A DNA stretch of 64,000 nt from assembly GCA_002269645.1 (NCBI GenBank), contig NIVC01000385.1, forward strand, positions 124,001 to 188,000, in the 5' to 3' direction. A program made the position numbers and the translations under genes. Positions 8,997 through 63,215 of the stretch are shown here, one piece after another. The notes below the pieces were generated by a model, which searched no databases, was not told where the DNA came from, and saw only the letters and a list, made by a program, of their open reading frames with translations. Each line of letters starts with the position of its first letter. The first letter of the stretch is position 1. This DNA comes from Macrostomum lignano (taxonomy: Eukaryota).

Positions 8997-9081
<85 letters not shown>

Positions 9082-9182: not shown

Positions 9183-9372
9183 CAGTACATGTATTCTTAG
9201 TGAGCATATGTAAGTTAAGCATAGTGCTGTGCAGTAGTTTACAAAAGCTTCCTCTTCGGCAAATAATAATCTGTCAGAACACCCGGGTAGTTAATCGGTC
9301 GAAAGTGTCTGGTCAGTTTGACAGTTTCAGTAGTTCGTGCATGCAAGATGCGTCTAGAATCTATCGTTTTCA

Positions 9373-12888: not shown

Positions 12889-13071
12889 AAGGACTACTCA
12901 AGTAGAAGGACGGGAAACTACGGGATGTAAAATTAACATAGAATCCTAACGCAATAACAATTTTTGCGTTGAAAAAATGGAAACCTCTCCGCAATGTATT
13001 TTTTGGTAAAACCTGCCTCGTAAAATTTTCCAAGAAACGTTGCTTTCCGTCGCACTACTTGAGTAGTCCTT
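12889..13071. mobile_element. Short MITE of the same family as 6886-7581
   Basis: TIR AAGGACTACTCAAGTAG at both ends. Shares TAGAAGGACGGGAAAC and AAATTAACATAGAATC with the 6886-7581 copy. Confidence 0.7.
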
Positions 13072-13933
13072 TATTTCCCTCTATAATTGTACTTTTTTCT
13101 TTATGATCCAAGTACAACAGACTGAAAAATGAATTAGTATTATCTTAGTACGAGCTATTGGCAGTAATAAGTTATTAACGTTTATTTACTTCGATGATGA
13201 AGACTGCATGGTTTCTAGGCCGAGGAGCAGCCTCGGGCATAGATACATGTAGTATAATCCCCTAGATGGGCCACTCTATTCAAACAATGTTAAAAATTTG
13301 CCCCGAAAAAGTTAGAAAAAATATTTTAGCCGACCACAGTCGCTTTAAGTCTATGTTCCTCAGTTCAGTAGCTGAGGGACATATAATGTTCAAAATGTCT
13401 ATGGTAATTTACGTTAAGGCAACGACATTCGAGCAATGACCGGTCATTGTTTGAAATTGACAATAAAGCAATTTACCAGGATATCGGGATAAAATTGTCT
13501 ATGGCTGTAAGGGGGGCTTCGCCCCCACACCCCCATTCCCCCTTCCCACTCGGATCCTGATGAACAAATTGAACAATCAAGTTAGCTATCGCCGCTCGTG
13601 TCTTGAATTCTCACTTCCAGACAACCCCCATCTCCTATTACCTGCTCCGGATCAAAACTGTCTGTGCTCACAGCTACCCAAGGAACAAGGTACGTGTGGT
13701 TTTGTTTATCCGTATTGTTGTGCTTTAATATTATTCAAGTAATTACATGTACGCTCGTACAACTAAATTTAATATATACAGCTTTCAGAATGACATGCAC
13801 TATAGTATGCATTGGTATATGCAAAACGTGGCTCTTTTCTACTGTTGGTAAGTTTCTGATGTTGGCTTTTTTTCTTAATATTTTTATTAGTGTTTTAATA
13901 GTTTGAGTAATTGCAGTGCAATTTACATGTAAT

Positions 13934-17198: not shown

Positions 17199-18355
17199 TC
17201 AGCTCTTCACAGACATGGCGGCTGCAAGCAGCTCTCTGCTGATGATGAGGCGCTGAATCTGTGAAGTGCCCTCATAGATCTGGAAGATCTTAGCATCGCG
17301 CATGAGCTTCTCAACCGGGTACTCCTTGTTGTAGCCGTTGCCGCCGAACACCTGCACAGCATCGGAGGCAGACTTGTTAGCCACGTCGGAGGCGAACGCT
17401 TTTGCCACGCTGGCATAGTAGGTGTTGCGCCGGCCGCAGTCGGCCTCGTAGGCCGCGCGCCACACAGCGAGTCGAGCCGTCTCCAGCCCGATGGCCATGT
17501 CCGCGAGCAGAAAAGCCACAGCCTGGTGCTGGGCGATGGGCACTCCCATGGTCTTGCGCTGCATGGCATATTGCGTAGCTTCATGCAGAGCGCGCTTCGC
17601 AATACCCACGGCGCCGGCACCAACTGGAGCGCGAGTCTTATCGAAAGCACCCATGGCGATCTTGAAACCCATGCCTGGCGTGCCAAGGACATTTTTGGCT
17701 GGGACCACCACATCCTCGAAAGTGATTCCGCGAGTGTCTGAGGCCCGCTGGCCAAGGTTGTCCTCCTTGCGGCCGGGATTCACACCGGGAGTGTCCCGGT
17801 CGACGACGAACCCGGTGAAAGCTTTGCCAGCTGGAGTCTTCGGGTCGGGGTCGCTTCTGGCTAGGACAAAATACCAATTAGCCACTCCGCCATTGGTGAT
17901 CCACATCTTTTGGCCATTGATCACCCAATCATCGCCTTTGCGCACAGCTGTAGTTTTAATCCCGGCTACATCGCTGCCAGCGCCAGGCTCAGTGACAGCA
18001 TAGGCGCACATCAATGGCTCATCTATAAGCCTCCCAAGGTACTCTTTCTGCTGTTCTTTAGTGCCAAACATGAGCAAAGGGCTGGCGCCCAGTCCATTGC
18101 CAAGAATGGCAGTCTGAATTCCAGAGCAACCGAAAGAGAATTCCTCAGTAGCTAGGCACTCATCAAAGACACCCAATTCAAGCCCGCCGAGCCACTTGGG
18201 CAGACTAAGATTCATCAGGCCAAGTGAGTGTGCCTTGCGAATTACTGGCCATGGATACTCGCCAGAGACATCGTACTGTGCCGCCACTGGTAGAATTTCA
18301 TCTGCAGTAAACTTTCGCGCCAGCTCCTGCAAGGACTGCTGTTCTTCAGAAAGCT
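17199..18355 (-). CDS. ACADM: Medium-chain acyl-CoA dehydrogenase, exon 2
   Basis: [63 protein letters not shown] (catalytic Glu in the MCAD position). Acceptor tttgtag|AG at 18355. Confidence 0.95.
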
Positions 18356-19011
18356 CTACAAATTTTGGGTGGTTGAGAATACTTAGACAGGTGATAGTTT
18401 CACGAGGCAGACATGAAAAAATACTGTATTTCACAAACTGACACATTGCTTCAACAATGTTTCAGAGCACACATGCATTGTATATACACATTTAGGGCTT
18501 TATTATAATGCATGACACATTGAGACAATATAGCTAATCCTTTTCCTTCTTTTCAGATAATATTATAAAGGTTAAAAATCAATTAGCATCGAGGCTTGAC
18601 AACCTTCGAGTGTACCAAAGATCAATTCACTTAAGCACTACGAGCTATTTTATATATAAACAGCTAGGTAATGCAATGGTTAGAATAGAGATTTCAAAAT
18701 CTTAGAAACTTTACTATTAAGTTAATATGGGTTATAATTCCTATTGGAGCAGCGGAAAATTCGAATCAATCTTAATTTTAAAGGAGTTCGATCTTGGCTT
18801 AGCTTAGAAAATTGCACCTATCATCTAGCATACAATTTTTCTTCAATTATATACACAATACATTTAGACAGTTAGACTAGAGTTAGACTTATAGACTTAT
18901 ATGTAAACTTATTAAAGTTTACAGAAGCATATGTAATCAATACAATAAGAGCCTAATCATGTAAGCTCTCAGACAGGCACTAATATAAAAATACGAGTAT
19001 ATAACGCTTAC

Positions 19012-36420: not shown

Positions 36421-38103
36421 TCACGGAAGAATTCGTGAAACATTTTTCACGGTGGCATTGCGGGTCCGCTTGGGGTTTCGAAGTCCCATGAAAATTTCAA
36501 TTAGTTGAACTGCATTCTCAGTTTGGCAGTCATGCTTAAGATTTAGTGCCGGAAACACGAGTACATAAACTAAAATTGCTTCCAGTGCGGTGTCAGTTTT
36601 CACCAGATGGCCAGGCACAGCAACACCAGTCCAACGAGCATCGAAGTTCTCAGCCTGAATGCTGACAAGGCGCTTAGCATTGAAGAAGCCATCCAAAGAC
36701 ACAACTTTTGCTTTGATTGACAGCAGCATTAGGCCTCTTTTGACATTTGTATCAGAGTCATCACTGGACTCAAGATAGGGCCCGGCACGCTTGCACCTAG
36801 CAAACAAAGATGCACTGCGACCAAACCAAAGCAATAGAAATTTTAGGCGCTCAAATAAATATTCAACAGATGTGCTTGACTGTGGCAAGTAGTCACTGGA
36901 CTTGGCAGAGGTGTACAACTCAATGACGCGGAGTGCCTCATCACACAAAAGTTGAGGATGGCCCAACAATGGGTAACGTGACAGTTGCTGAGCAACTGTC
37001 ATGTACTGAGCAGCTTGCACACGGTGTTGGAAAGTTGTCTTCATCAGCTCAGATGCCGTCCCAATAGGAACAGTTAACTCGCCATTTGTAATCATCTCCT
37101 GCATTGCTGATTCAGTTGCATCACCATCCAGAGTCCCTTCTGGCCCATGATCTTCTATCATTGATGCCAGATCACTAGCTCGAACTTCGGACTCATCATC
37201 ATCATTGTTGTCATCGTCCTTATCATTGTCACTACTTTCAGATTGGCCAGCAGAAGGCAAATTTTCTTCAGCAGATTCAGGATCCAATTGAGGTGGCCGG
37301 CGGCGCTTAGATCCAGAGGCACAAGCCTCACCTTGTGATTCAGTGGCAGCAGCAGCATCAGAGCTTTTCCTCCCAAACTTTTCACGCATCTCCAAAATTT
37401 TTGGTGGCAGGTCAGAAGAATTGGTAAATGTGGTTTCACGCCAATTCCTGATGCGACGCCGAATTCCAATCCGCCAGAAGGTATGACCAAGTCCACCTTT
37501 GACAGGATTCCACCGTTCTGCATCAGCAAGATTAGGAAACTGTCCAACAATTGCACTTGAAAAGACTTTCATCTCTTTTGAGCTTAAGTGTGGTTTTGTT
37601 GCATTGATGTACTTTGTTGTGATGTCATTCATAATTGGCCTGAGCAGTGCATTCACAAAACCTTGATCATTCTTCAATACAGCAGCCTTCTCTTTTGTGT
37701 TTGCCTGGCTTATTTTCTCAACAAATGTCTCTGGATAGCTAGGCAGCTCATATGTGGCAGGGACTTCTTGGACTTGAACCTGTGAACTACTGGAAGTGTT
37801 TTCCTTATCAGGTCCCATTTCCTTGGAAACTGTTGATGGCTCAGGCTCTACATTTGAGGCTTTAAAAAGGAAGACCTGGCTGCTTGGATTATCGGCAGTG
37901 ATTGCTTTCCAAGTGTCAGAATCTGCAATTTCGAAGCCATCCTCTGTGCAAACAAGTGGGCTTGGCACATTGCTGATTCCTAGGGCTGTACATCCAGCAG
38001 TTACAAAATTGTCAAAGTCAGAATTTTGCAGGTTGATCAGAACTTTCTTCTCCTTTCCAACTGCAGAAATTTTGTACAATGGCATGAATTCAGCTGCGGG
38101 CAT
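36421..38103 (-). CDS. Transposon accessory protein (ORF2, 560 aa; SAMD3-like class with an N-terminal PB1/CIDE-N-like segment)
   Basis: Open 560-codon ORF downstream of the transposase and inside the TIRs. LVCTEDGFEIADSDTW resembles the CIDE-N/PB1 motif; acidic linker; C-terminal AILVYVLVFPALNLKH is like EnSpm-associated SAMD3-like proteins. Confidence 0.65.
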   Translation of the reverse strand: MPAAEFMPLYKISAVGKEKKVLINLQNSDFDNFVTAGCTALGISNVPSPLVCTEDGFEIADSDTWKAITADNPSSQVFLFKASNVEPEPSTVSKEMGPDKENTSSSSQVQVQEVPATYELPSYPETFVEKISQANTKEKAAVLKNDQGFVNALLRPIMNDITTKYINATKPHLSSKEMKVFSSAIVGQFPNLADAERWNPVKGGLGHTFWRIGIRRRIRNWRETTFTNSSDLPPKILEMREKFGRKSSDAAAATESQGEACASGSKRRRPPQLDPESAEENLPSAGQSESSDNDKDDDNNDDDESEVRASDLASMIEDHGPEGTLDGDATESAMQEMITNGELTVPIGTASELMKTTFQHRVQAAQYMTVAQQLSRYPLLGHPQLLCDEALRVIELYTSAKSSDYLPQSSTSVEYLFERLKFLLLWFGRSASLFARCKRAGPYLESSDDSDTNVKRGLMLLSIKAKVVSLDGFFNAKRLVSIQAENFDARWTGVAVPGHLVKTDTALEAILVYVLVFPALNLKHDCQTENAVQLIEIFMGLRNPKRTRNATVKNVSRILP

Positions 38104-38339: not shown

Positions 38340-41030
38340 TTAGAAGGGCAAAAAGGAAGATAAAATAGCATAGTGTTTACCTGCAATTATGTCTACAAAT
38401 ACTGGTGGATGGAGAAATTTGTGTACTGGATCAATAATATTAACTTGTGATGTTGGTTTACAATAAAAAGTAAAGTATGATGGCAAAAAAATGGAATTGT
38501 AATTTTTTGTTACCAAAAGCCACTTGCCCTTAATGCATATAATTTTAAAAAGTGATGATAGGGTTAGATCATAGCAATCATCAAAGTCTTGATGTTTACT
38601 TTGAAAAATAATCATTGACTTGTACTTAGTTGGAGCTTTAAACTCTAATGACCCTATTTTTAAACTACTTGCTACAATACAATCCTTAGGCATATCATTT
38701 ATACTAGGCAACTGCAAATAACTAGCAATGGTTTCGATTGTTTGAAAATCAAAAAGATTAACAAGTGATACTTGTTGTAAATTTGAAGCCAATGGAACAT
38801 CAAATTCAACAGTAGACATTGTAATAGCTTGATGCAGTTGAAACCTTTGTGCTGCTGTTGCACATACATTTTTAAAGCAACGTACTATAGGTATTATTTT
38901 TTTAAAGTACTGATGGATTGACTCAAATCTCATTGTCCATGCTACTTTCAATCCATTATACATAGGGATTAGGTCTGGATAATGCAACATATAATGGAGT
39001 TTACATTTTTTTGATAATTGATTGTTTGATACTTTGTATATTAGGTTATTATGTTCATTTATTAAGGTAGCAATATAGTCTGAATTGTGTTCTTCTTCAT
39101 CTAAAGTTGATAATAAAATGGCCAGAACTTCACAATGTATTAATAGAAGATTCATGATATCATACTTAATTGGATTATTACTGGAAAGAACATAAGGCCC
39201 AAAATATAGAGGCATTCGATGGATAATGTGAATCATATCTGCTGCACAGAATGGCAATCTATTATTGTTGATGTGTGCTGGCAAAAGAGAAGGCATTGAG
39301 ACAGGGAAAAGTTTGAAAAGCCTTTTGATATTATCAAAATTTAGGATTTTGTGCCTTAATAAGAATTTAATAGCAAGACAAGCAACGAAGTGTGATGTAC
39401 CTTCTAGTAAATCATGAAAAAAATCTGGGGGGAAAAAGTAAGGCATGGTAACATATCCAAGACCATTGAATGGACAGTTTTGCTTAATTCCAGTTTGAAT
39501 GCTAATGTCCCAGCTATCATCTCTACTTAAGTCATCATGCTTAGTTAGACAAAAATCAATGTCAGTAGCCTTTGCAATACAAAATCTACATGCTTGGCCT
39601 GATACAAAATTTGTCCCAAGTCCAACAAGTGAATTAATTGATAGGTTGTCACCAGTACATAAACATGCAATAACTGGAACATTTATTTTTTCCCCATTTA
39701 AAGCTTCAAATGTAATTCCATAGTCATACAGATTATTCAATTCTTCAATCAAAGGAGAATATAGCTCTTCAAGGTTGAGGATATTATCTTGAATAATTTT
39801 ATATTTTACTAAGCAAGCTAAAAAGAAACACTTTTCTTGAGATGCAATTTCCTTTGGCAGATTTAAAATTCGATAGTAAATTGCATAAATTTTATGCTTA
39901 CACCTAGCTTTACCAATTGGGTTTGCCACTTCAAATTCATCTGTATATAGTGCAAGATAAATAGCATCTTTAGGGTCATTTTCAATTAATGGTTTGATAT
40001 AATTTTCAAAGTATGGACTAGAAAAGAAAGGTGATTTTTCCTTTAATTCCCCAGTAAAAATCATAGATTGAAAATATTTATTTTGTAAAACTGAAGAAAT
40101 ATTGCTTTTGATTGGAATATAAACAATACTATTCCTATTAAATAATGGTACTTCAATAGGTTCAACAAATTGATAATGCCCTTTAATAAAACTTAACAAC
40201 TGTGAATCACTTTCTAATATTTCAAGGCAAGTATCAAAGAATGATTCTAATTGCAAGAAATCTTGGACCCCTTGGATGGTTTTATTTGGAATACCTTTTT
40301 CTTTCAGGAATTGACAAATGGTTGATAGATATAATATACTAAAGGAAGAAAAAATGCCTTTTACTTGTAAACTTAATGACCTTGCTGTACTATTTGGTAA
40401 GCTGAAATAATCTCTAGCTTGAAAATAAAACTTTGCCATGTTGCAACCACTGTTTGATTTTAACTTTTCTTTCAATTCCCATGCAGATGATTCTGGCCTG
40501 GCTAGTGCTAACATAGAAACAGGAGGCCTAACTAGGTTTGATAAATCTCTAGACCCTTCTTGGTTTTTAAATTCAGCATGTACAAGCTGGTTTTGTTCAA
40601 TGTCAATAGGCATATTTATTGTAGAAGATCCAGTCAGTAAGTGTTCATTCATATGCATATCATTGGCACTGGCTTGATTGCTAGGACTTATGTCTGTAAC
40701 ATCAAATTGAAATGGCTCAGTTAAGCTTTGACTTAGGATAGTATCACTGTGGAACCTAGAAATATGCTTGATAGTGGCTTCTTTCGAGGATGAAAATACA
40801 AAACAATTCTGTAATGGACACTGAAACTTCAGTTGAATTTCAGCTGACCTAGTGGACAAGAGAGGACAATAATGGCGATAATGCTTTAAAAACTGGGATA
40901 AAGAAGTGCTCTTACAACCACATTTACATGTGAACATGGACAAGGAGTTATGACTTGCCATCATAAAAAAAATGAAGCCAAAGTAAAGCTTAATAGCTTT
41001 GGAACTATACAAGTAAAATTCAGGAGCCAT
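38340..41030 (-). CDS. EnSpm/CACTA-type transposase with N-terminal C2H2-like zinc fingers (start probably the MMASH Met)
   Basis: CKCGC...HYRHYC and CPLQNC...HISRFH fingers; LYTDEFEVANPIG...KHKI, GDNLSIN, CRFC, PPDFFHDLLEG, CKLHYMLHYP, WTMRFESIHQYFK. Confidence 0.88.
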   Translation of the reverse strand: MAPEFYLYSSKAIKLYFGFIFFMMASHNSLSMFTCKCGCKSTSLSQFLKHYRHYCPLLSTRSAEIQLKFQCPLQNCFVFSSSKEATIKHISRFHSDTILSQSLTEPFQFDVTDISPSNQASANDMHMNEHLLTGSSTINMPIDIEQNQLVHAEFKNQEGSRDLSNLVRPPVSMLALARPESSAWELKEKLKSNSGCNMAKFYFQARDYFSLPNSTARSLSLQVKGIFSSFSILYLSTICQFLKEKGIPNKTIQGVQDFLQLESFFDTCLEILESDSQLLSFIKGHYQFVEPIEVPLFNRNSIVYIPIKSNISSVLQNKYFQSMIFTGELKEKSPFFSSPYFENYIKPLIENDPKDAIYLALYTDEFEVANPIGKARCKHKIYAIYYRILNLPKEIASQEKCFFLACLVKYKIIQDNILNLEELYSPLIEELNNLYDYGITFEALNGEKINVPVIACLCTGDNLSINSLVGLGTNFVSGQACRFCIAKATDIDFCLTKHDDLSRDDSWDISIQTGIKQNCPFNGLGYVTMPYFFPPDFFHDLLEGTSHFVACLAIKFLLRHKILNFDNIKRLFKLFPVSMPSLLPAHINNNRLPFCAADMIHIIHRMPLYFGPYVLSSNNPIKYDIMNLLLIHCEVLAILLSTLDEEEHNSDYIATLINEHNNLIYKVSNNQLSKKCKLHYMLHYPDLIPMYNGLKVAWTMRFESIHQYFKKIIPIVRCFKNVCATAAQRFQLHQAITMSTVEFDVPLASNLQQVSLVNLFDFQTIETIASYLQLPSINDMPKDCIVASSLKIGSLEFKAPTKYKSMIIFQSKHQDFDDCYDLTLSSLFKIICIKGKWLLVTKNYNSIFLPSYFTFYCKPTSQVNIIDPVHKFLHPPVFVDIIAGKHYAILSSFLPF

Positions 41031-50136: not shown

Positions 50137-51567
50137 ATGGTAAGTCATCGCCTAAGTAAGCATAAATCTTCAGAATGCAGCACCCGCGTTGCGACCAACT
50201 CAACCACTACTATTGAGCTTCGAGAGGCTGTACAAGATGCAGAAATGGAAGAAGACTCCTCGCGAAATGGGTTCAGCTGCATTCGTCGAAGCAACTGTGC
50301 ACTGAAGATCCCAGCAGATGCTCCAACGAGGACCGAAGCGTACAAGGCTTACATGAGTTCCCATCCGACTGCCAAGCTCATCGGAATCAACGGTGGATGG
50401 TACGACATTTCCAAATTCATCCCGCACCACCCAGGCGGCTCTGTGATTGCTCAGTTTGTTGGCAAAGACGCTACTCCCGTGTTCAAAGGGCTGCACACCA
50501 AGGATGTGCTCAAACACATGCGGCCTGTAGCCACCTACAGACTGAGCGAAGACGACCCTGCCGCTGAGGCGTTCGCAGAGCTGCACCAGTTCTTCATCAA
50601 GCAGGGCTTCTTTCAAACCAGTGCAGTGTGGTATGCCGGCAAGATGGCGTTTGCAGCCTCTTTGTTGGCTCTCACGTTGTTTCTGGTTGTGGGCTGCAGC
50701 TCTTGGTACTGGCACTGTCTGGCCAGCTGCAGCCTCGCTCTGTTTTGGCAGCAATGCGGATTCTTCATGCACGACTTCATGCACAGCCAAGGCTTCCACG
50801 AGCGCAAGATTGACAACTGGATCGGCCTCGCGTGTGGAACGCTCGGTGTGGGCGTCAACAGCTTCTGGTGGCAGGAAGAGCACTACGTCCACCACGCACT
50901 CACCAATACGGTCGACTATGAGAATGGGTTTTTCGACCCTCAGATGAAAGAGGAATCGTGGGCGCAAAACAAAAAGTTGTTTCCATTCTTCACAATGAAA
51001 CTGCAGCATAAGCTGATAAAAATCCAGCATTGGACATTCCTTCCTGCCTGCATAATACTTGGTCGAACTGCTATAATCATCACTGCATTCAAGAGTGAAA
51101 GAAGACCTATTGTGTGGCTGGCTCTGATTTTGCACATTATCTGGGTGAGCGTTCTCTTGTGCCAACTTCCAACATGGACTCAAGTTTTTGTAACTTACTC
51201 CTTGGCGTCAATGCTAGAAGGAATTCTCCATGTCCAGCTATTAGTGAGTCACTACTGTAAGCCTTTCTACGAGCGCAAAGAAGTCTGCGAGGAGACTAAC
51301 TGGTACCGAATGCAGGTTGAGTGCAACATCAACATAAAGAACCCCGTGTGGATGGACTGGTTTCATGGCGGGCTGAACTTTCACATCGAGCACCACCTGT
51401 TTCCGCTGATGCCAAGACACCGGTTCAGGGAAGCGAGCAAACATATAAAGGCTGTGTGCGCTCGACTCGGGATTGAGTACGACGAGTGTTACTGGACGAC
51501 TGCTCTGGTGAGGACCCTGCAACAGCTGAAGAATGCTGCGGTTGTCTTCTCCCTGGATCCGAGATGA
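50137..51567 (+). CDS. Cytochrome-b5-fused (front-end type) fatty acid/sphingolipid desaturase, copy 1, intronless, 476 aa
   Basis: HPGG heme motif, HDFMH, HYVHH, third box HIEHH (GGLNFHIEHHLFP); hydrophobic helices. Confidence 0.92.
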   Translation: MVSHRLSKHKSSECSTRVATNSTTTIELREAVQDAEMEEDSSRNGFSCIRRSNCALKIPADAPTRTEAYKAYMSSHPTAKLIGINGGWYDISKFIPHHPGGSVIAQFVGKDATPVFKGLHTKDVLKHMRPVATYRLSEDDPAAEAFAELHQFFIKQGFFQTSAVWYAGKMAFAASLLALTLFLVVGCSSWYWHCLASCSLALFWQQCGFFMHDFMHSQGFHERKIDNWIGLACGTLGVGVNSFWWQEEHYVHHALTNTVDYENGFFDPQMKEESWAQNKKLFPFFTMKLQHKLIKIQHWTFLPACIILGRTAIIITAFKSERRPIVWLALILHIIWVSVLLCQLPTWTQVFVTYSLASMLEGILHVQLLVSHYCKPFYERKEVCEETNWYRMQVECNINIKNPVWMDWFHGGLNFHIEHHLFPLMPRHRFREASKHIKAVCARLGIEYDECYWTTALVRTLQQLKNAAVVFSLDPR

Positions 51568-53389
51568 GAACGAAACGAGTTCTTATCGCGTACGGACCAA
51601 CTGACGTAGTTTTCGTAGTGTACGAGCGTATAATCGCTTCGAATAATTTTGTTTTTTGTACTGCTGAAAAGTAGCCGATGTTACGTACCAATCAGGATTG
51701 GTTGTAGAAATTTTATGGGTGGAGTTTTATGGATTTGGGACTCATTCTTAATAAATCAGGTGTAGCCAGAAGCTTAGAGCTTAGTCGAATGTGCTTCTCT
51801 GCCTCTGGAGCATGCGAGAAACGGCATATAAATGTACAGACTATTGTAGCGATAGCGTTACTTTTCAGCTTTCGACTCTAGGGGTTAGTTTATAATATTT
51901 GAAATGCAGCGGCCAAGGATCTAATTCTGACGTACAGTTTCTAGCGTGCGTTGATAGGGCAGATGCAAATTCTACTGCTTTTATTGTGCTTAATCAGTCT
52001 TCACCGAAAATTTACTCAAACTGACAATTATCTGGTTGAACTAAGCATTCCATTGTTGCCTAGTAGGGGCCTTGGCCAAGTTCTGTGCCTTTTCAAGTGA
52101 TATACGATTTGTAGGTTACCTCAACCTTTTTTAACTGAATCGGATTTTACTGGCTTTTTAAATCAAAACTAGAAATAGTTTTGTGTGTTTAAACGTGACA
52201 ACAAGTGATTAAAAGATGATTTTTATTGCTCCCTTTCAACTGCTTGACTGCTTACTTTTTCCTTAGCTTTTTCTAGAATTAATTGAGCTGCTATCTACGA
52301 GCGTATGGCATACTTTCCCTTGTGAGCGGACGAATATTGTTTTGTACTGCTTTGACGTTGATGTCTTTTGATTTGATCTATAAAATTTGACGAAAATATC
52401 TTTCAAAAAACTAGATTTAGATATCTTGTTAAATGCTTCATTCTGCCTGTGCTCGGACTCTATTTAATCCTTTTAGAGTGATCTACATGTATCATGCTTT
52501 TTGTCTTTTTTTAATTTTTATACTGTCATTTCTGATCTAGTACTTTATGACAACTTAAAATTTTGTTTGACTTATTGAATTTTTTCAGCCGCCAATCTCT
52601 ATTCGGTAAATAACATTGTCCGCTCTGTATTCGAGTTGAATTCTCTCTGGCATTGATTTTATTCATAGAAACAAGTTGGCAGATATAGCTCCAGATAAAA
52701 CACAATGAGTTTATTGTAAATATGTACCAACAAACAAATGACATGTCCGCACGTGAGGTAAAATAAACCAAGCTGCATGTAGTTCGTCGATCGTTCATCG
52801 CCAAACCTATCGTATATGGCGGGCTCGCGTTATCGAAATGCGGTGTTGAAATGTAGGAGTACGCTATTTAGTTAGATCTAAAATATTCTCTTTGCCGTAT
52901 GGCTACAACTTTGCCATATCCTATAGTTTTTTCTGCCAAGGCCCACGCTCCACCCCAGGTGATTACAGACGGGGCGCGCAGACACACAGCCCTGCTATAT
53001 GTATGCCAATAAACAGAGCATCGGAAAGGTGTTCAATAATAACATATCAATGCAGTATATCTGATTCGTATAGAATCTATAGAGCTCTATTTTCATGCTC
53101 TAATTATTGAGCAATAAATAATTCGTAATTAGCTACCTAAAATATATGACCACTTTTTGGAACTTGAAACGATATAGGACGAGTGATGGAAGAATCAGAT
53201 ATTCTTCGGGATAGTAACAATGTATCATATCGTCACACAGTAAAGTATTATTGTTCTAAATCTGAACGAATGGAGACATTGCTAATTCTATCACGTTTCT
53301 ATTGTCAACTTCAAAAAGAAGCTGCGTTATGTATCTTTTTGAAGTTGACTCTTAAATTAGATTCCTAAAGTTGAGCTCCTTTGGCCAAT

Positions 53390-54740
53390 GATTGCCAAAA
53401 GGTTCCATCGTTATATCTGGGGTCGTACGGCGCAAGTGCAAAGCGACCACAAGCCACGAATCGATCTGTAAGAAGGCTTTGCGTGACACTACTCCTCGAA
53501 TTCAGCGACTCCTTGCTTCAGTTGCAACCTTACGCTCGTATGACATCCGCGTGAAGTACACGCCCGACTAAGACCTTTACGTAGCCGACACTTTAAGTCG
53601 AGCTCACGGTGCAGCTGATCTTCTCACTATTCAGCTTGAGGCTGCGCTTCACGGCCAAGATTTTTTAGTGGAATGCTGCTTTAGTGGTGATCGAGAAATC
53701 TTGCAGGTTATAAAGGCTGCGACAGAAAATGCAACTTAGCGAGAGGTTGCAAACTGTAATCATGGAGGCTTGGCCAGAGCATCGGTCGAAGTTGGCAGAC
53801 GACGAATTTGAAGCCTTCTTTGGGATATCCGAAATAACCTGACGTTTGCCTCTGGTCTTCGATGCCGTATTTAGGACCGTATCTATGGTATGTCGGCTCC
53901 AAAATCGGAGCAATTAAAATCCTTCGTTTGAGGCACCCTAGCATTTTAAAAATGGACCTCAAGGCCAAGAACTATTTTCTACTGGCCAGGAATGTGGAAC
54001 AGCGTGAAGCAGGTGGTTAGTGAATGCGAATTCATGCCAGCAGGATATGATGACTCAGTCAAAAGTAACGTTGATGCCAAATTTTTCAACGGACCCATTT
54101 GAGTTCCCTGGTGGATCCTACTTTGTGTACGTTGACTCCTACAGTCGCTGGATGAGTGTCACGCGGATGAGACCAGCCCTAGCTTGGCTGTGGCGCATGT
54201 GATACGAGATCATTTAAAAAAATTGGAGTGCCAGAGAAGCTAGTCAGTGATGGAGGTCCGCAGTTTTCTGCTCTCGAGTTTCGACAAACAATGGCTGAGT
54301 TGAAGGTGGAGCGCACGTACCCGCAGTCGAACGGTAGAGCCAAGCGCTACGCATAGACAGTCAAAAACATGCTGAAAAAATGTCCCAAGATAGGCCAAAG
54401 TTTATAGTTGGCACTGCTTCACTACTGCAACACTCCGGTTGGCAGCGGCTTTCCAAGCCCGGCGGAGATGGCTTTCGGCCGTAAGCTTCGTTGTGACCTG
54501 CCAGCGAATTTCAAGGACCTGTAAACAATGGAAACTCGTCTTCACACCAGCATAGAGGCTTTTGTAAAACAGATAACCGCAGCTATATAATTGTGGAGCT
54601 CCAACCCTTGCGGAAACTAGCAGCTGGTGATCTGGTGTGGTTACAACGCGGTCGTCGCGAATGGGTGGTAGCTGAGATTGATAGCGAGTGTGAGAACTCT
54701 TCAGGGTCGTACTGGGTCAAACAGCTCAAAATACTCGTCA
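53390..54740 (+). mobile_element. Old degenerate Ty3/gypsy RNase H-integrase fragment
   Basis: Frame-broken motifs: RFHRYIWGR..VQSDHKP, LYVADTLSRA, YFYWPGM...V.ECE, VDSYSRW, SDGGPQF, YPQSNG, NTP...PSPAEMAFGRKLR. Confidence 0.75.
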
Positions 54741-55619
54741 ACAGTATAGTCCTATCAATAAAAAATATTCATCTAAAATTGCTGATTTTATTATGTCAAA
54801 ACAAACAAGAAAAAACGTTAAAAGAGACGAAACTGCAAACTGCAAACTATGCAAACCATTACGAAAATCGGCCTCCAACGAATTTTCCACGAAAGTTGAG
54901 TCTTGCGTCCTATATATACGTTACTTTAGTCGTCCTTGAGCCGGCCTTGGGCAGCGAGATGGGGCCTAGGCCGTATCGTGGCCGAGCTTATCAAGACTCC
55001 TGAGTACTACCAGGCGGCCTAAGCCTAAGTAAACCGATTTGCCATTGACTGTCACTTTATTTAACAGTTATTTTTGCGCTCACTTAAACTACCACTCGTA
55101 TTTTAAGCATCCAAATACTCAGCTTACTCAGCTACACACTAGTATACTATGCGTATTGTATATGAGATCATTCTGTGGTTATCTAATAACTCAGATTGCA
55201 GGACTTTCAGGAGTATTCTAGGTATCAGATATTCTGATACCAAATATGATTTTGTTCCTTAGTTCTTTTCTTTTCTTTTCTTTCGTTCAAAAAATTGCAT
55301 TATCATTCCTTCACTAGGGATGCAAGTTCGTAACCAAAGTTCCTTTCGTTTAGATCGTTTCAAACAGAAATCTTTCGAAGGGTGATGTTGTGTATTGCAT
55401 TCAATGACTACTTATAACTCTACTTAGAGTTGTTAAGTAGTCCTTGATTGCATTTTGTATCAGTTGTTTTGGTTTAACTGCAGGATCGAGAGCTCTAGCC
55501 CAATCAATCCAATATACTAAAATGCTTTATTCATGCGCACCGGCTTTAGGTTCTAGTGTAAAATGTAGAACCTACATTCTACACCGCATCGCTCGTCTAT
55601 TTAAAATATATTAACTTGT

Positions 55620-55838
55620 GGCTAAGTGGCTTTTTGAAGTGAATCACCCTCCAGCACTACAGTTTTTGTGAGTGGTTTGTCGAATTTCGACATGGCCTAC
55701 GGAGTCTGGATGATGACGAGTGCAGCGGCCGTCTCCCTATCAAGCAAGCGATGAGAATTTTGCTGCTATTCCGGCTATGATTGAGGATGATGCCAGGGTA
55801 ACTGTGTCTCAGATAGAGGCATAAGTATGCATCCCATA
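55620..55838 (+). mobile_element. Mariner transposon, 5' part (HTH region); 5' TIR not found
   Basis: EFRHG..SLDDDECSGR...ENFAAIPAMIEDDARVT; interrupted by the LTR element. Confidence 0.7.
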
Positions 55839-55848
55839 TGTTGTGTAG

Positions 55849-56901
55849 TTGGTTTGCAGATTTGTACATATGTACAGTGAGTGGAAGAGCCTGTTTGAAA
55901 ACTACTTAATGGCGGTGGGCTTCGACACTCTACCAGACGCGAGAAAGCGAGCCCTGCTTCTGCACTGCCTGGGTGCTGAAGGACAGCGGATCTTCGCAGC
56001 GATGCAGCCACCACGATCTCAGAATTCGGATGATGAACAGCCACCGCTGGGATTCGACGAAACCGTGAAGCTGCTAAAGGAGCAGTTTGGTGGCAAGACC
56101 AACGTGGTGGCGGAGCGCCACAGGTTTCGGCAGCGAGGGCAGCGACCCGGTGAGAAAATCACTGACTTTGTGGCAGCGCTGTACACGCTGGCCGGCTCGT
56201 GCGAGTTTGGCGGCATGATGGACGAGATGATTCGCGATCAGATCGTGGAGAAGGTCAGCGACAGGCGGATCAGAGAGCGCCTGCTCATCGAGGACGGCCT
56301 GACACTCAAGAAGGCGGTGACGCTGAGTCAGCAGTGGAAGACCAGCATCGCGGAAGCCAGCGCGATCGAGACTGGCGGCGCAGTTGCCATGGCAAGTCGA
56401 GGCGAGGCAGAGGTGAACAAGGTGCAACATCAGTTCGGAAAGTCCAGAGCTCAAGAACAGGCGACTGTCGGGCGAGAGTCCTGTCCGAACTGCGGAGGCG
56501 GCCACAACAGGCGAGCGCGATGTCCTGCTGAAGGCAAGTCCTGTTATGCCTGTGGCAAGCAGAACCATTTTGGCAGGGTGTGCAGGTCGCAGGGCACTAA
56601 GGTGGCCGAGGTCGGAGACGAGAGCAGCCGCGAGGTCTTCACCGTGCGTGGTACGGCCAGTCCCGACATCAGGTGCCGGCTGAAGGTCCAGGGCAGCTGG
56701 CTGAGCCTGCTGGTCGACTCGGGCGCGAAAGTGTCCATTCTATCGGAGAGGACCTACCGGAAGCTCGGGTCCATGGCGCCGCTGCAGCCATCCAGCAGGA
56801 AGCTCATCGCGTACAACGGCAAGGCTATCGACGTGCTGGGACAGCGGTGCTGTCGGTCAACTACTGCGGGCAGAGTGTGCCGCTCTTCTGCTTCACAGTA
56901 G
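55849..56901 (+). CDS. Gag (two zinc knuckles) plus aspartic protease, 5'-truncated, frameshifted near 56845
   Basis: LLHCLG, ERHRFRQRGQRPGE, CPNC...H..RC and CYACGKQNHFGRVC, LLVDSGAKVSIL. Confidence 0.8.
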   Translation: MVCRFVHMYSEWKSLFENYLMAVGFDTLPDARKRALLLHCLGAEGQRIFAAMQPPRSQNSDDEQPPLGFDETVKLLKEQFGGKTNVVAERHRFRQRGQRPGEKITDFVAALYTLAGSCEFGGMMDEMIRDQIVEKVSDRRIRERLLIEDGLTLKKAVTLSQQWKTSIAEASAIETGGAVAMASRGEAEVNKVQHQFGKSRAQEQATVGRESCPNCGGGHNRRARCPAEGKSCYACGKQNHFGRVCRSQGTKVAEVGDESSREVFTVRGTASPDIRCRLKVQGSWLSLLVDSGAKVSILSERTYRKLGSMAPLQPSSRKLIAYNGKAIDVLGQRCCRSTTAGRVCRSSASQ

Positions 56902-58727
56902 TGCAGAAGGGATCCGACATCATGGGCACCGATCTGATGCAGCCGCTCAGCTTCCAAGTGGTGGACCGGGACGGCGACCTGGTGGGCACCGTGGACAAGA
57001 CCAGGCAGCTGCAGGCTTGGCTTCCAGACCGCTTCGAGCAGCTGACGCGAGGACTCGGCCGGATTCGAGGGTTCGAGCACCGGCCCCGAGTGAACCCCGC
57101 AGTGCCTCCAGTGGCGCAGCCTCTCCGCCGGACGCCGCTCAGCCTCAAGGAAAAGGTCCAAGCTGAGATCGATCAGCTTCTAGCGGACGGGATCGTCGAG
57201 GAGATCCAGGCATCCGAGTGGATTTCGAATCTGGTGGTCGTCCCAAAGCCTGACGGTAAGATCCGAATCTGCAATGACCTCAGGTGCCCCAAAAAGGCAA
57301 TTGTGCCGGACAAGCAGCCTCTGCCGACATTCGAGGAGCTGACCACGGAGTTCAAGGGCTCGACGGTTTTCTCAAAACTAGATCTGAACTCATCGTATCT
57401 GCAGCTTGAGCTCGCCGAAGACAGACGCGATATGACGGCCTTCATCACGGAGAAAGGTCTCTATCGGTACAAGCGGGTTTGTTTCGGTCTCAACGGCGCT
57501 CCGGCAGCCTTCCAGAAGGTGCTGAGCAAGATTATGCACGGCTGCTCAGGAACGGTGCACTACATCGACGACATAGTCGTGCACGCTGCCAGTGAGGCTG
57601 AGCATCACGAGCGGCTCACTGCGGTGCTCGACAAGCTGCTGGCCCACGGCGTCACTCTGAACGCAGGCAAGTGCCAGTGGGCTGCTGAGTCTGTGCAGTT
57701 CCTGGGCTACATCGTCTCTGCAAGCGGCCTGCGACCGATGCAGTCAAACGTGGAAGCTATCGAGCAGGTGCCGGAGCCGAAGAGCGCTGAGGCGGTGGCG
57801 GCATTCCTTGGAATGGTGAAATTTTACGCCAACTTTTTTCAAAATGTGTCGGATGTCGCCGAGCCGCTGCTGAAGCTGCTGAGGAAAGACGTGCCCTGGG
57901 ACTGGTCCGCAGACTGCCAGAAGGCTTTCACAACGCTCAAGAAGATGGTGCTGGCGCCGACCTGTCTGAGGTTTTTTAGTCCGGATGAGAAGATCATCGT
58001 TGCCTGCGACAGCTCGGCGCACGCTCTGGGCGCCGTTCTGCTTCAAGAAGACGGCGCCGGCGTCCGGAGATCAGTCGCGTTTGCGTCCAGAACCCCATCA
58101 GCGACTGAGCGCAAGTACTTCGCGTCTGAAAGAGAGGCATTGGCATGCATCTTCGCCTGTGAGAGGTGGCACTATTTCCTGTTCGGCCGGAGATTCGAGC
58201 TGCACACGGACCATCAGGCGCTGACTACGTTGCTGACGGCTCAGGGCAGCGGCCACCGGCCATTGAGACTGCACCGGTGGGCCGACCGCCTGCTCGCGTA
58301 TGACTTCCAGGTCTGCCACGTTCCGGGGAAAAAGAACACCGTTGCGGACTTTTTGTCGCGACACGGCGCCCGCAACGACAGCGGCGAGGAGGACCCGGCG
58401 GAGCTCCAAGTGAACGCCGTCCTGCTGTCTGGCGCGCTGCAGATCGTGAGCCCAAGCGAACTGGCTGAGGCATCTCTACAGGACCCGGTGATCAGCCAGG
58501 CAATCGAGATGACGCTGGAGGGCTGGCCGAGTTCCATCAAGCAGTTTTGGCCGGAGCTGCAGCCGTTCTGGCGGATCAAGGAGCAGCTCACAGTCTGGAA
58601 CGAAGGCAAGTGCCTGGCGAATGGGTTAATCGCGGTGATCTCCGCGTCGTTGAGAGAGAAGACGCTGCAGCTGGCGCACTTTGGGCACCTCGGAGTGAGC
58701 AGAATGAAGCAGACTGGGTGCGCGTGA
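56847..58727 (+). CDS. Pol fragment: RT, RNase H and start of integrase (core deleted)
   Basis: WISNLVVVPKPDGKIRICNDLR, KLDLNSSYLQ, FGLNGAPAAFQ, YIDDIVV, ACDSSAHALGAVL, ELHTDHQAL, NTVADFLSR, HLGVSRMK. Confidence 0.85.
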   Translation: MLSVNYCGQSVPLFCFTVVQKGSDIMGTDLMQPLSFQVVDRDGDLVGTVDKTRQLQAWLPDRFEQLTRGLGRIRGFEHRPRVNPAVPPVAQPLRRTPLSLKEKVQAEIDQLLADGIVEEIQASEWISNLVVVPKPDGKIRICNDLRCPKKAIVPDKQPLPTFEELTTEFKGSTVFSKLDLNSSYLQLELAEDRRDMTAFITEKGLYRYKRVCFGLNGAPAAFQKVLSKIMHGCSGTVHYIDDIVVHAASEAEHHERLTAVLDKLLAHGVTLNAGKCQWAAESVQFLGYIVSASGLRPMQSNVEAIEQVPEPKSAEAVAAFLGMVKFYANFFQNVSDVAEPLLKLLRKDVPWDWSADCQKAFTTLKKMVLAPTCLRFFSPDEKIIVACDSSAHALGAVLLQEDGAGVRRSVAFASRTPSATERKYFASEREALACIFACERWHYFLFGRRFELHTDHQALTTLLTAQGSGHRPLRLHRWADRLLAYDFQVCHVPGKKNTVADFLSRHGARNDSGEEDPAELQVNAVLLSGALQIVSPSELAEASLQDPVISQAIEMTLEGWPSSIKQFWPELQPFWRIKEQLTVWNEGKCLANGLIAVISASLREKTLQLAHFGHLGVSRMKQTGCA

Positions 58728-59432
58728 GTTGGCCGTTCGCGCGTGACAAGCTGAGCAGCCGGCTGTCCGAGCCATTGGAGATCTCGAGAATCGCGAGCGC
58801 CACCACAGTGACCCTCAGTGACGGCTCTCGGTGGCACGTCGACAACTGCGTGCGGGTGCAGCGGCCAGCAGGAGCGCTACCGCAGTGGCCCGCGCCAGCC
58901 GCCACGACGGCTCCGACACCCGCGGCGGCGGCGGTAGCGGCGGCAGAGGCGGCCGAAGAGCTGCCGTCGCATCAACGAGCACCGACGGCGGTTCGTGCGA
59001 GTGCGAGGAGTCGGGCTCCGCCGCAGTGGTACGGGGATGTGGTGATTCACTGATTGAAATATCTGCAAAGGATTTTTGAATTGCAAGCCTTTGGTTTTTT
59101 AGTTTTCTATTTAAGGTTTTTTGCGATTGGGACTTAATGTCGAACTCTTTCAAATATTTTATTCCTAATGTTCATGTCTGTTTTATTGTTTTTAAATATG
59201 TAATCGATTTTCGAATATTTCGTCGACAAGGCAACTCGTTCGCGAGGGAGAGTGAATGTTGTGTAGTTGGTTTGCAGATATGTACATCTGTCATCTGCTA
59301 TGTACATTTGTTTGCCGATATTGATTTGACGCAGCTAAATAAATATCTAAGTATAAATATACTAGTCGAAGGCCAACGTGGTCTAAGTTCGTGTGTACCC
59401 CCAAAATCAGTCTGACTTTCTCGACACAACCA

Positions 59433-60226
59433 CCATCCTCAACCTCAACCTGAGCAAGATTTCTGCACGCTGGGTGCCTCATCACCCTGATGGAGAAACA
59501 AAGAAGGCTCGGGGTGGCTTCGTACAATGCCATGCTCGACAGATTCGATGATGACCGCTCAGACTCGGTCTGGGAACTCGTCAGTGGTGACGTATCCTGG
59601 ATCTGTAGTTTTGACCAGAGTCCAAGCAACAGTCGGCCCGGTGGACACCAGCTGGAAGCCCCACCATTGAAGCTGCAGCAAGAGCGCAGCGTGGCAAAGC
59701 AGATGCTGGCCAATTTTGTGATGAAAGCTGGTCATCTAGCGATAGTGCCACTTGTGCAGCAGCGCACAGCCACTGGCGACCGTTATACCAACTACTGCTT
59801 GCCAGAAGTGCTGAGTGCCCTCTCCATTTGCCGCCCAAGGACTTAGCTCGGGTGTGCTTCTTCATCACGACAACACCCCCGCCCACAAGTCCAGGCAAGT
59901 GGTCGAATTCCTGACTGGAGAACGCATTCAAGAGCTCGGCCATCCACCCTGCAGCCCAGATCTGGCCCCGTGCGACTTCTTCGTGTTTCCGAGATTCAAG
60001 CAGAAGATGTGTGGCAATTCATCGCCGGAAGCTGCAGTCGAGGCCTTCATCAAGCATGTCAAGGGGGTGCCAAGTTCGTAGTGGTCCAGCTGCTTCAATA
60101 GGTGATTTGAAGGTATGCAACGGTGCATAGATTCTTCTGCAGAGTACCTTGAAAAAATATGACTGTCAGTTGCTCTCTAACTATTTCAGTCTTTCACATC
60201 CGGAAAACTTATTGAATAACCCCTCG
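59433..60226 (+). mobile_element. Mariner transposon, 3' part (D34D catalytic domain and right TIR)
   Basis: KISARWVPH, SGDVSW, HHDNTPAH, SPDLAPCDF with 34 residues between the second and third D; TIR CCGGAAAACTTATTGAATAACCCCTCG followed by TA. Confidence 0.85.
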
Positions 60227-60713
60227 TATGTATAGAAGTATGGGCTCTCTTTGGAGCCAATTCCTTCAACGGAAAATTTCTGTGCCCATATTTCAGAGTG
60301 CGTACAAGGCAAAGTGGGGTACGTTCGCCCGCTTTTCTCCACGCGCTCGCAGCATGACTAATGCCCTAGTGGAATCCTCTCCAAGTAGATTTTGGTGTGG
60401 GCTGTCTGGTAAATCTATTTTTAGAACAGGCCATCAAACCATTGCTGTATGGTCCGAGCAAATATGAAGCGTAGTGCAGCATGCTACGTACAAGTGTGCA
60501 AGTACGAAGGTTCATATTATGGGGTGTTCAATCTGACCGTTCCGTATCTCGACCACTCATGTACGTATTCTAAAACCTCTATATATTCCTTAACTCTGAC
60601 TAGGACTCCATTTTGCTTTCGAATTTGAACTGTTAAAGAAAAAATACGTGACGAGCTTACCACTTGCATGAAGTTAACAAGATAAATTAAAACACCCTAA
60701 CTATCAAACAAGC

Positions 60714-62156
60714 ATGGTGAGTCATCGCCTAGGAAAGCATCAATCAGAATGCAACGCTAGCATTTCAGCGAAGGCCGCTACTTTTAAAATCCGTGAAACC
60801 AATAAGCATGAACTGGCAGCACAAGATTCTGAAACGGAAGAAGACTCCTCGCGAAATGGGTTCAGCTGCATTCGTCGAAGCAACTGTGCACTGAAGATCC
60901 CAGCAGATGCTCCAACGAGGACCGAAGCGTACAAGGCTTACATGAGTTCCCATCCGACTGCCAAGCTCATCGGAATCAACGGTGGATGGTACGACATTTC
61001 CAAATTCATCCCGCACCACCCAGGCGGCTCTGTGATTGCTCAGTTTGTTGGCAAAGACGCTACTCCCGTGTTCAAAGGGCTGCACACCAAGGATGTGCTC
61101 AAAAACATGCGGCCTGTAGCCACCTACAGACTGAGCGAAGCTGACCCTGCCGCTGAGGCGTTCGCAGAGCTGCACCAGTTCTTCATCAAGCAGGGCTTCT
61201 TTCAAACCAGTGCAGTGTGGTATGCCGGCAAGATGGCTTTTGCAGCCTCTTTGTTGGCTCTCACGTTGTTTCTGGTTGTGGGCTGCAGCTCTTGGTACTG
61301 GCACTGTCTGGCCAGCTGCAGCCTCGCTCTGTTTTGGCAGCAATGCGGATTCTTCATGCACGACTTCATGCACAGCCAAGGCTTCCACGAGCGCAAGATT
61401 GACAACTGGATCGGCCTCGTGTGTGGAACGCTCGGTGTGGGCGTCAACAGCTTCTGGTGGCAGGAAGAGCACTACGTCCACCACGCACTCACCAATACGG
61501 TCGACTATGAGAATGGGTTTTTCGATCCTCAGATGAAAGAGGAATCGTGGGCGCAAAACAAAAAGTTGTTCCCATTCTTCACAACGAGACTGCAGCGCGC
61601 GCTGATTGCTATTCAGCATTGGACGTTCCTTCCCATCTGCATCATTGTGGGAAGACCGTACATCGTTATAGCAGCAATTGTGAGTGAAAGAAGACCTATT
61701 GTGTGGCTGGCTCTGATTTTGCACATTATCTGGGTGAGTGTTCTCTTGTGCCAACTTCCAACATGGACTCAAGTGTTTGTAACTTACTCCTTGGCGTCAA
61801 TGCTAGAAGGAATTCTCCATGTCCAGCTATTGGTAAATCACTACTGCAAGCCTTTCTACGAACGTAAGGAGGTCTGCGAGGAGACCAACTGGTACCGAAT
61901 GCAGGTTGAGTGCAACATCAACATAAAGAACCCCGTGTGGATGGACTGGTTTCATGGCGGGCTGAACTTCCACATCGAGCACCACCTGTTTCCGCTGATG
62001 CCAAGACACCGGTTCAGGGAAGCGAGCAAACATATAAAGGCTGTGTGCGCTCGACTCGGGATTGAGTACGACGAGTGTTACTGGACGACTGCTCTGGTGA
62101 GGACCCTGCAACAGCTGAAGAATGCTGCGGTTGTCTTCTCCCTGGATCCGAGATGA
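60714..62156 (+). CDS. Cytochrome-b5-fused desaturase, copy 2, intronless, 480 aa
   Basis: Same motifs as copy 1 (HPGG, HDFMH, HYVHH, HIEHH). Confidence 0.92.
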   Translation: MVSHRLGKHQSECNASISAKAATFKIRETNKHELAAQDSETEEDSSRNGFSCIRRSNCALKIPADAPTRTEAYKAYMSSHPTAKLIGINGGWYDISKFIPHHPGGSVIAQFVGKDATPVFKGLHTKDVLKNMRPVATYRLSEADPAAEAFAELHQFFIKQGFFQTSAVWYAGKMAFAASLLALTLFLVVGCSSWYWHCLASCSLALFWQQCGFFMHDFMHSQGFHERKIDNWIGLVCGTLGVGVNSFWWQEEHYVHHALTNTVDYENGFFDPQMKEESWAQNKKLFPFFTTRLQRALIAIQHWTFLPICIIVGRPYIVIAAIVSERRPIVWLALILHIIWVSVLLCQLPTWTQVFVTYSLASMLEGILHVQLLVNHYCKPFYERKEVCEETNWYRMQVECNINIKNPVWMDWFHGGLNFHIEHHLFPLMPRHRFREASKHIKAVCARLGIEYDECYWTTALVRTLQQLKNAAVVFSLDPR

Positions 62157-63215
62157 GAACGAAAGCATGAGTGATTGTGTACTTAAGAATTTCTTAAAAT
62201 ATTTACCTCCTATTTTATCACTCAAATACTGCTGCAAATGTAAGGGTATCTACCGCGTGCAAGGGTATTTTTTAATTTTTTAACTGTGGGTAAGTGGCTG
62301 CTTTTAGCCTGAGGTTTACATAAACTAACAGTCTAACAGTCCAACAGCATGACAGCAGTAGTTTCAAGGCATTATCCATGAATGTTTCAAAATCAAACTC
62401 TTGGCTCTTCCACCTCTACCAATCAGAGCTAGGTAACACTTGATAGGCAGCTGAGGTACAGAAGCGACAGTTTGATTTCTGATGGACTTCACGCTAGCAA
62501 TTCGCAACAAGTTGCCATTGTGCGTCTCTGCCCGAATAAATCCAATAGATATGAGTAGCAAAGTGAATTTTCTCTTTAGTGGCTAATTTACCCCCATATT
62601 GACGACTATTCATTCATGACTAACCGTTGATATGTAAATTTGGTAATCTCCAGTTGAGTTCACCTCAAAGTACTCCTATATACATGCTTATTTTAAGTAC
62701 GCTCGTATATATTCACTTCTAGCAAAATAGCTCGTACGCTCTTTACTCGCAATTTTCTGGGTGCACAAAGAAAATGACTGATTTGAAAAAAAACAAAGGA
62801 AATTTAAATGCCATGGTGCAACAAATTATATATCAGCAAGCTTAAAAAACTCAATTGTGTCAGTTCGCTTTTTCTTAGCTATTTATGTTGTAATCAATTG
62901 TTATTTAAAAATATTTATTTGAACTTTTATTGACAGTACCATGATTTTTTTGTACAATCGAGCATCTGTTTCGCTCTTTTATCTAAAAATATCTTATTGA
63001 GGACTGAATATTTATGCTTTTTTAATGAGATAGGCTTAGTCTTTGATTTTCACGAATCCTGTTCGCGATGCCTCTCGTGATTCAAAATATAATTTGCCGA
63101 TAACCGGAAGGATCATTTCTGTATCCGCATGAGTACTGTGTACTGTACTCTAGAAGAAATGCTTTATTTAAGATTCTAAATATCTAATAGAACAGTTTTG
63201 TGCAGCTGCAAACCT

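Follow-up and report, generated by a model that had tools for sequence, protein, structure and literature searches.

Membrane-bound desaturases carry three histidine boxes, the third of which follows the general motif H/Q-X2-3-HH (PMC3423564; PMC4286622). Glutamine at the first position of this box is repeatedly named as a distinguishing feature of carboxyl-end desaturases fused to cytochrome b5 (bioRxiv 10.1101/2025.08.12.669868; PMC3423564; PMC4286622), and QXXHH has been used as an inclusion filter in surveys of animal desaturases (PMC6010785; PMC10597677; bioRxiv 797753). Here we describe two paralogous cytochrome-b5/desaturase genes of the flatworm Macrostomum lignano, both of which encode HIEHH at this site. 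They lie within a stretch of 64,000 nucleotides, referred to below as the window (contig NIVC01000385.1 of assembly GCA_002269645.1, positions 124,001 to 188,000). An initial annotation of the window invoked the glutamine hallmark, which is described as such in the sources cited above, and treated the histidine as a Q-to-H substitution. That framing does not hold: histidine is fixed throughout a large and ancient clade and is not peculiar to the two paralogs.

Cytochrome-b5 fusions with histidine at this position have been encountered before in crustaceans, whose HXXHH b5-desaturases are reported to have no capacity for fatty-acyl desaturation and serve as "sphingolipid desaturase" outgroups (PMC10597677; PMC8080000). 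In the diatom Thalassiosira pseudonana, a sphingolipid delta-10 long-chain-base desaturase that is itself a cytochrome-b5 fusion has been characterised, whose similarity to the fungal SLD8-type delta-10 enzyme lies below 20% (PMC4440215). Trienic long-chain bases, in turn, are found in an anemone, a sponge, an ascidian and starfishes (PMC4440215).

The desaturase pair and the H-type clade

The two genes and their principal motifs are listed below, with all positions given in window coordinates and amino acids (aa) numbered separately for each copy.

50137-51567, forward strand: copy 1, a cytochrome-b5/desaturase fusion of 476 aa in a single exon, a member of the H-type clade (open reading frame, Pfam, gene call in GCA_002269645.1)
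50428-50439, forward strand: haem-binding HPGG motif in the cytochrome b5 domain, copy 1 aa 98-101 (invariant in alignment A1)
50770-50784, forward strand: histidine box 1, HDFMH, inside the clade signature MHDxMH, copy 1
50881-50895, forward strand: histidine box 2, HYVHH, copy 1
50935-50943, forward strand: DPQ motif including Q269, copy 1
50995-51093, forward strand: patch divergent between the paralogs, copy 1 aa 287-319, located after box 2 and before box 3 in a predicted membrane helix
51250-51252, forward strand: H372, an extra histidine invariant in H- and Q-type enzymes and a candidate ninth metal ligand, copy 1
51382-51396, forward strand: histidine box 3, HIEHH, copy 1 aa 416-420 (CAC ATC GAG CAC CAC; H416 is the CAC at 51382-51384)
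60714-62156, forward strand: copy 2, the paralog of copy 1, 480 aa in a single exon (open reading frame, Pfam, protein comparison)
61017-61028, forward strand: HPGG haem-binding motif, copy 2 aa 102-105
61359-61373, forward strand: histidine box 1, HDFMH, copy 2
61470-61484, forward strand: histidine box 2, HYVHH, copy 2
61524-61532, forward strand: DPQ motif including Q273, copy 2
61584-61682, forward strand: divergent patch, copy 2 counterpart
61839-61841, forward strand: H376, the copy 2 counterpart of H372
61971-61985, forward strand: histidine box 3, HIEHH, copy 2 aa 420-424 (H420 is the CAC at 61971-61973)

Both open reading frames (ORFs) are uninterrupted and read FHIEHH, and the CAC codons that the initial annotation had placed at 51382 and 61971 are directly visible in otherwise intact frames. 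The two proteins are 91% identical. Pfam detects in each a full-length Cyt-b5 domain (PF00173; 41.6 and 41.8 bits, cutoff 23.7, E-value about 1e-10) and an FA_desaturase domain (PF00487; 109.6 and 109.9 bits, cutoff 29.7, E-value about 3e-31), with matches to the latter covering profile positions 2-251 of 253. All three boxes of the PF00487 superfamily, HX3-4H, HX2-3HH and (H/Q)X2-3HH, are intact in both copies, and the N-terminal cytochrome b5 domain with its HPGG motif identifies both as cytochrome-b5 fusions. The assembly annotates them as Cyt-b5/FA_desaturase genes of 476 and 480 aa, and the M. lignano protein BOX15_Mlig019763g1 (P0001; 480 aa, 91% identical to copy 1) agrees with copy 2 in length and identity. 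The public gene range of copy 1 extends over 12 kb (2001-14020 of NIVC01000385.1:172137-188156) and runs into the beginning of the copy 2 gene, even though its coding sequence (CDS) is a single exon of 1.4 kb; this gene model probably includes an over-extended untranslated region or read-through.

Two trivial origins of the histidine were considered and rejected. A sequencing or assembly error is very unlikely because the same codon occurs in both copies, both genes are called, and histidine occupies this column throughout the clade. Contamination from a diatom diet is likewise contradicted by the nearest relatives, which are animal proteins at 53-58% identity, while the diatom members of the clade are only about 31-32% identical to copy 1 (alignment A1); in addition, the contig is 639 kb long and carries animal genes, including a rhodopsin-type G-protein-coupled receptor (GPCR) and an acyl-CoA dehydrogenase.

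A word-indexed search returned 100 homologs, 95 of which include the third box, and the first position of that box is histidine in 93 of these, both glutamine cases being distant. The closest relatives in this search were animal, among them a Lineus-type protein (P0005, 58%) and a Lingula protein (53%), and the proteins of Lingula, Priapulus, Branchiostoma and Diplonema are 44-53% identical to those of the window. With a protist member as the query (P0079, from the diatom clade), a second search reached diatom, choanoflagellate and diplonemid proteins, every clade member among them having HxxHH together with a box 1 of MHDxMH, as well as plant and fungal delta-8 sphingolipid desaturases that are about 26-32% identical to P0079 and have GHDSGH and QxxHH. 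The nearest Q-type match, used as the query of a third search, recovered classical delta-6/delta-5 front-end desaturases from Lobosphaera, Marchantia (MpDES6), Tribonema and Pythium, along with a fish FADS1-type protein. An exhaustive phmmer scan over 1.84 billion cluster representatives, which does not use a word index, gave the same picture: the third box is present in 36 of the best 38 representatives and is H-type in all 36, and Q-type proteins (delta-6/delta-5 and delta-8-sphingolipid) dominate only below an E-value of about 1e-58. The clade so defined extends over marine invertebrates, choanoflagellates, diplonemids and diatoms, and includes ascidians such as Styela, Ciona and Clavelina. 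Thus, the survey of histidine against glutamine among homologs finds the H-type to be common, already annotated as "sphingolipid 10-desaturase" and treated as non-front-end in the invertebrate literature (PMC10597677), and none of the HIEHH homologs was found to be characterised as a conventional front-end desaturase.

In a tree built from an alignment of 189 sequences, a single pure-H clade unites 123 of the 125 full-length H-type proteins with those of the window, which sit inside it nearest to its animal members. The split between this clade and the delta-6/delta-5 and SLD8 outgroups received 88 of 100 neighbour-joining bootstraps in a thinned set of 71 taxa, computed without the outlier group P0095/P0098. 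Within the neighbour-joining tree, the window pair joins P0002, next P0003, P0007 and P0008, and next the Lingula (P0004) and Owenia (P0006) proteins. A strict bipartition holding all H-type sequences was recovered in only 15 of 50 bootstraps, broken by P0095 and P0098, and was not retained. Taken together, the searches and the tree indicate that the H-type clade is old and distinct from the Q-type enzymes, and that histidine is its fixed, ancestral state, not one derived in the flatworm lineage.

Two side observations concern the margins of the survey. A second, small group of H-type cytochrome-b5 proteins (P0095, P0097, P0098 and P0100) has HIEHHFFA, DQA in place of DPQ, and about 23-26% identity; JGI gives one of its members the label "delta-13 desaturase". 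The tree places P0095 and P0098 outside the main H clade, and their motif recurs in P0097 and P0100. Among b5 fusions, a histidine at box 3 was therefore gained or retained on more than one occasion. The sole arthropod-named match in the first search, a fly protein of 318 aa (P0089, Condylostylus longicornis), is H-type and aligned over only 24% of the query; its name, "acyl-CoA 6-desaturase-like", may be wrong in the manner described for decapods.

The H clade can also be recognised by residues other than the histidine. Conservation within the clade reaches 93% or more at 46 alignment columns, and copies 1 and 2 have the consensus residue at 46 of 46. In copy 1, nine histidines are conserved (H212, H216, H249, H252, H253, H372, H416, H419 and H420) in addition to HPGG. 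Three columns set the clade apart from Q-type enzymes: H416 (100% H versus 100% Q), Q269 (DPQ versus DPD, 98% each) and G309 (versus A). Both copies have the full clade signature of MHDxMH, DPQ and HxxHH. Among about 440 sequences, the position equivalent to 269 is Asp in none of about 208 H-type proteins and in about 199 of 228 (about 87%) Q-type proteins, and positions 416 and 269 are thus coupled. This pairing of H416 with Q269 could be a reciprocal change in the second shell of the di-iron site. About 20 Q-type sequences have Q at the 269-equivalent position and may be intermediates. An AlphaFold2 model of copy 1 made from a 146-sequence alignment has a mean predicted local distance difference test (pLDDT) score of 90.5 and a predicted template modelling score (pTM) of 0.87, with only aa 1-52 disordered.

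The window proteins resemble FADS1, FADS2 and the delta-6, delta-5 and delta-4 enzymes of plants and algae in their N-terminal b5 domain with HPGG, three boxes, length, predicted topology and Pfam domains. These classical front-end enzymes, however, have QxxHH, a box 1 of (A/G/S)HDxxH and DPD, are 24-32% identical to the window protein, and fall on the sister or outgroup side of the 88%-supported split. Neither copy has the QXXHH of front-end Fads/Fed, both reading HIEHH, and neither groups with the delta-4/5/6/8 fatty-acyl desaturases, since both are placed in the pure-H clade (88/100). Of the named sphingolipid enzymes reached by the searches, the nearest were the plant and fungal SLD and SLD8 enzymes, cytochrome-b5 fusions that act on sphingoid bases; SLD8 has GHDSGH in box 1 and QxxHH in box 3 and lies on the Q side of the split, features that the window proteins do not share. 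Like the Thalassiosira delta-10 desaturase, the window proteins are membrane desaturases fused to cytochrome b5, and diatom homologs from Nitzschia, Amphora and Synedropsis are H-type and belong to the same clade, although box 3 in the diatom members is H(S/I)(P/V)HH as opposed to HIEHH. The decapod "delta-6 Fad-like" HXXHH genes also encode animal b5 fusions, and are regarded as non-front-end and provisionally as sphingolipid desaturases; no crustacean name appears among the matches listed. Finally, HxxHH is the ordinary third box in the desaturase superfamily, and stearoyl-CoA desaturase has nine histidine ligands, including the first histidine of box 3. In SCD1 and other HxxHH desaturases, the first histidine of box 3 is a metal ligand and nine histidines are conserved; the window proteins likewise have nine conserved histidines. 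Unlike the window proteins, animal SCD1 has no fused N-terminal b5 domain; it gave no detectable sequence match to the window protein in a PDB search and was not among the top Foldseek matches.

Selection and duplication history

Divergence between the two copies, estimated by the Nei-Gojobori method, amounts to 0.037 non-synonymous (dN) and 0.161 synonymous (dS) substitutions per site, a ratio of 0.23 that falls to 0.02 in aa 331-476, the stretch with box 3. Decay into pseudogenes is rejected by these ratios, by the intact ORFs and by the retention of all invariant residues, in agreement with the initial annotation, which had argued against decay. By the same measures, both copies are functional genes under purifying selection.

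The synonymous divergence is a mosaic, with dS of about 0.02 in aa 46-280, 0.87 in aa 281-330, 0.13 in aa 331-476 and 0.57 in the N-terminal tail. At the DNA level, the copies are 95.6% similar over 1351 bp (50226-51575 versus 60815-62164), which is essentially the CDS, and their flanks are unalignable. Because similarity is bounded by the CDS and synonymous divergence is mosaic, the pattern suggests an old tandem duplication that was partly homogenised by gene conversion. The segment at aa 281-330 has a dN of 0.18 and 18.5 non-synonymous differences, the listed changes spanning aa 287-319. Asymmetric evolution of this patch was considered as a sign of neofunctionalisation, for which the case is weak: copy 2 is slightly more derived, but neither copy is markedly so, and because the divergent helix varies across the whole family no such claim is made.

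Substrate and reaction

The initial annotation had suggested a different regiochemistry or reaction for the pair. The first part of this suggestion stands insofar as the proteins very probably do not carry out delta-5 or delta-6 fatty-acyl desaturation, whereas nothing points to a hydroxylase or conjugase. On balance, the pair is somewhat more likely to consist of sphingoid long-chain-base desaturases of the delta-10 or delta-8 type than of anything else. This assignment is suggested by the annotation link to the diatom enzyme, by the negative fatty-acyl results for crustacean HXXHH proteins and by the marine range of the clade, which matches that of polyunsaturated bases. NCBI/UniRef gives the name "sphingolipid 10-desaturase" to the animal and diplonemid members from Lingula, Priapulus, Branchiostoma and Diplonema.

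In such an enzyme, the fused b5 domain, with HPGG as its haem ligand, would take electrons from NADH-cytochrome-b5 reductase and hand them to a di-iron centre held by the nine conserved histidines. By analogy with stearoyl-CoA desaturase, and in common with the majority of membrane desaturases, H416 would be a direct metal ligand; a ligand role may be assigned to H372 by the analogy with stearoyl-CoA desaturase. Activation of O2 would then lead to the removal of two hydrogens and the formation of a double bond. Within a ceramide or glucosylceramide, the putative substrate would be the sphingoid long-chain base and not a fatty acyl chain, and the products would feed into the bases with two or three double bonds that marine organisms are known to contain.

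Several points weigh against this assignment. The "sphingolipid 10-desaturase" names are apparently automatic transfers, presumably from the diatom enzyme (Michaelson et al. 2013, Phytochemistry 90:50, as cited in PMC4440215). No demonstrated activity was found in the literature for animal members of the clade, and a literature search on the phrase "sphingolipid 10-desaturase" returned no papers. Cluster look-ups of the diatom clade members gave no curated name, and none was named as the Thalassiosira enzyme. This enzyme and the crustacean HXXHH sequences are putative members of the clade. In a Foldseek search of the PDB with the model, no solved desaturase came close; the matches were confined to b5 domains and, with template modelling (TM) scores of 0.46-0.57, a subunit of a chloroplast complex.

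An alternative that we consider unlikely, though the strongest of its kind, is that the proteins desaturate fatty acyl chains (acyl-CoA or acyl-lipid) at an unconventional position, such as delta-11-like, mid-chain or on very long chains, instead of sphingoid bases. Cytochrome-b5 fusions are diverse in substrate and their regiospecificity is poorly predicted by similarity (PMC4440215), and the sphingolipid fatty-acyl desaturase of a moss, which is related to the long-chain-base desaturases, is likewise fused to b5 (bioRxiv 10.1101/2025.08.12.669868). Some clade members are indeed labelled "delta8-fatty-acid desaturase" or "fatty acid desaturase" by JGI, but these labels are automatic, and sphingolipid 10-desaturase is the sole name in the clade that looks curated. 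Moreover, fatty-acyl desaturation capacity is reported to be absent in crustacean HXXHH b5 desaturases (PMC10597677), and the decapod "delta-6-like" genes come without supporting functional data (PMC8080000). It is improbable that histidine marks a different reaction on a lipid substrate, such as that of a hydroxylase, conjugase, acetylenase or epoxygenase. Di-iron enzymes of the superfamily are known to switch between desaturation and hydroxylation through a few residue changes, as in FAD2 variants, and the clade has its own coupled signature near the active site in H416 and Q269. Yet HxxHH is normal in ordinary desaturases across the superfamily, among them the methyl-end enzymes, and fits the general H/Q-X2-3-HH motif, so histidine alone does not indicate altered chemistry, and no search match was named as a hydroxylase or conjugase.

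It is more improbable still that the proteins are relics devoid of catalytic activity, or b5 proteins that are not enzymes, in which histidine records a lost front-end function. A Q-to-H change in the borage delta-6 desaturase is reported to abolish activity (attributed to Sayanova et al. 2001), a result cited in the initial annotation. It is not transferable to the flatworm proteins, because the borage enzyme has a Q-type background and histidine is ancestral in the flatworm clade. The lack of fatty-acyl activity in the crustacean HXXHH proteins (PMC10597677) would also be consistent with inactivity. Against this, the dN/dS of 0.02 around box 3 reflects strong purifying selection, HPGG and all nine histidines remain unchanged within a clade that covers several eukaryotic supergroups, and histidine was not derived in the flatworm lineage.

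A broader scenario can be imagined, although we regard it as speculative and doubt that it holds in full. The H-type clade would be the missing animal machinery for the 4,8-diene and 4,8,10-triene bases specific to marine invertebrates, with paralog lineages, possibly including the flatworm copies, whose differences lie mostly in a single membrane helix (aa 287-319), acting as delta-8 and delta-10 enzymes. The H416/Q269 pair, in place of the Q/D of classical front-end enzymes, would reciprocally rewire the second shell of the di-iron site and so separate sphingoid-base from fatty-acyl chemistry.

The window pair is a further set of members of a known and already annotated but poorly characterised clade, and the finding, while real, is largely ordinary. 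The histidine marks an enzyme clade of its own and is not a point change, whether harmful or innovative; the window genes should therefore not be counted as front-end desaturases of polyunsaturated fatty acids (PUFAs) when the long-chain PUFA capacity of flatworms is inferred. The clade has a wide distribution among marine animals and protists, and the QXXHH filter systematically removes it from surveys of animal desaturases. M. lignano is a tractable laboratory flatworm in which RNA interference and transgenesis are available, and its pair would offer a convenient entry to the presumed sphingolipid role.

Surroundings of the pair

Between the two copies, at 55849-58727 on the forward strand, lies a truncated Ty3/gypsy-like retroelement. 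Its gag-like ORF shows weak matches to PNMA and aspartyl protease and is followed by one bearing RVT_1 and RNase H domains. The fragment showed no ORF for an integrase, and no long terminal repeats or direct repeats of at least 80 bp flanking it were found within 52000-60700. A separate reverse transcriptase fragment is located at 14243-14959 on the reverse strand. Also on the reverse strand, an ORF of 896 aa with a Transposase_21 (tnp2) domain (38340-41030) adjoins one of 560 aa without a Pfam match (36421-38103). The window is rich in mobile elements.

The animal genes mentioned above are both on the reverse strand. An ORF at 9373-10521 matches 7tm_1 profile positions 100-229, the second half of a rhodopsin-family GPCR, and another at 11722-12333 matches positions 1-85, the first half; the two probably represent exons of the same receptor gene. 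At 17199-18446, a single-exon ORF of 415 aa encodes an acyl-CoA dehydrogenase with all three ACAD domains, another intronless gene of lipid metabolism on this contig.

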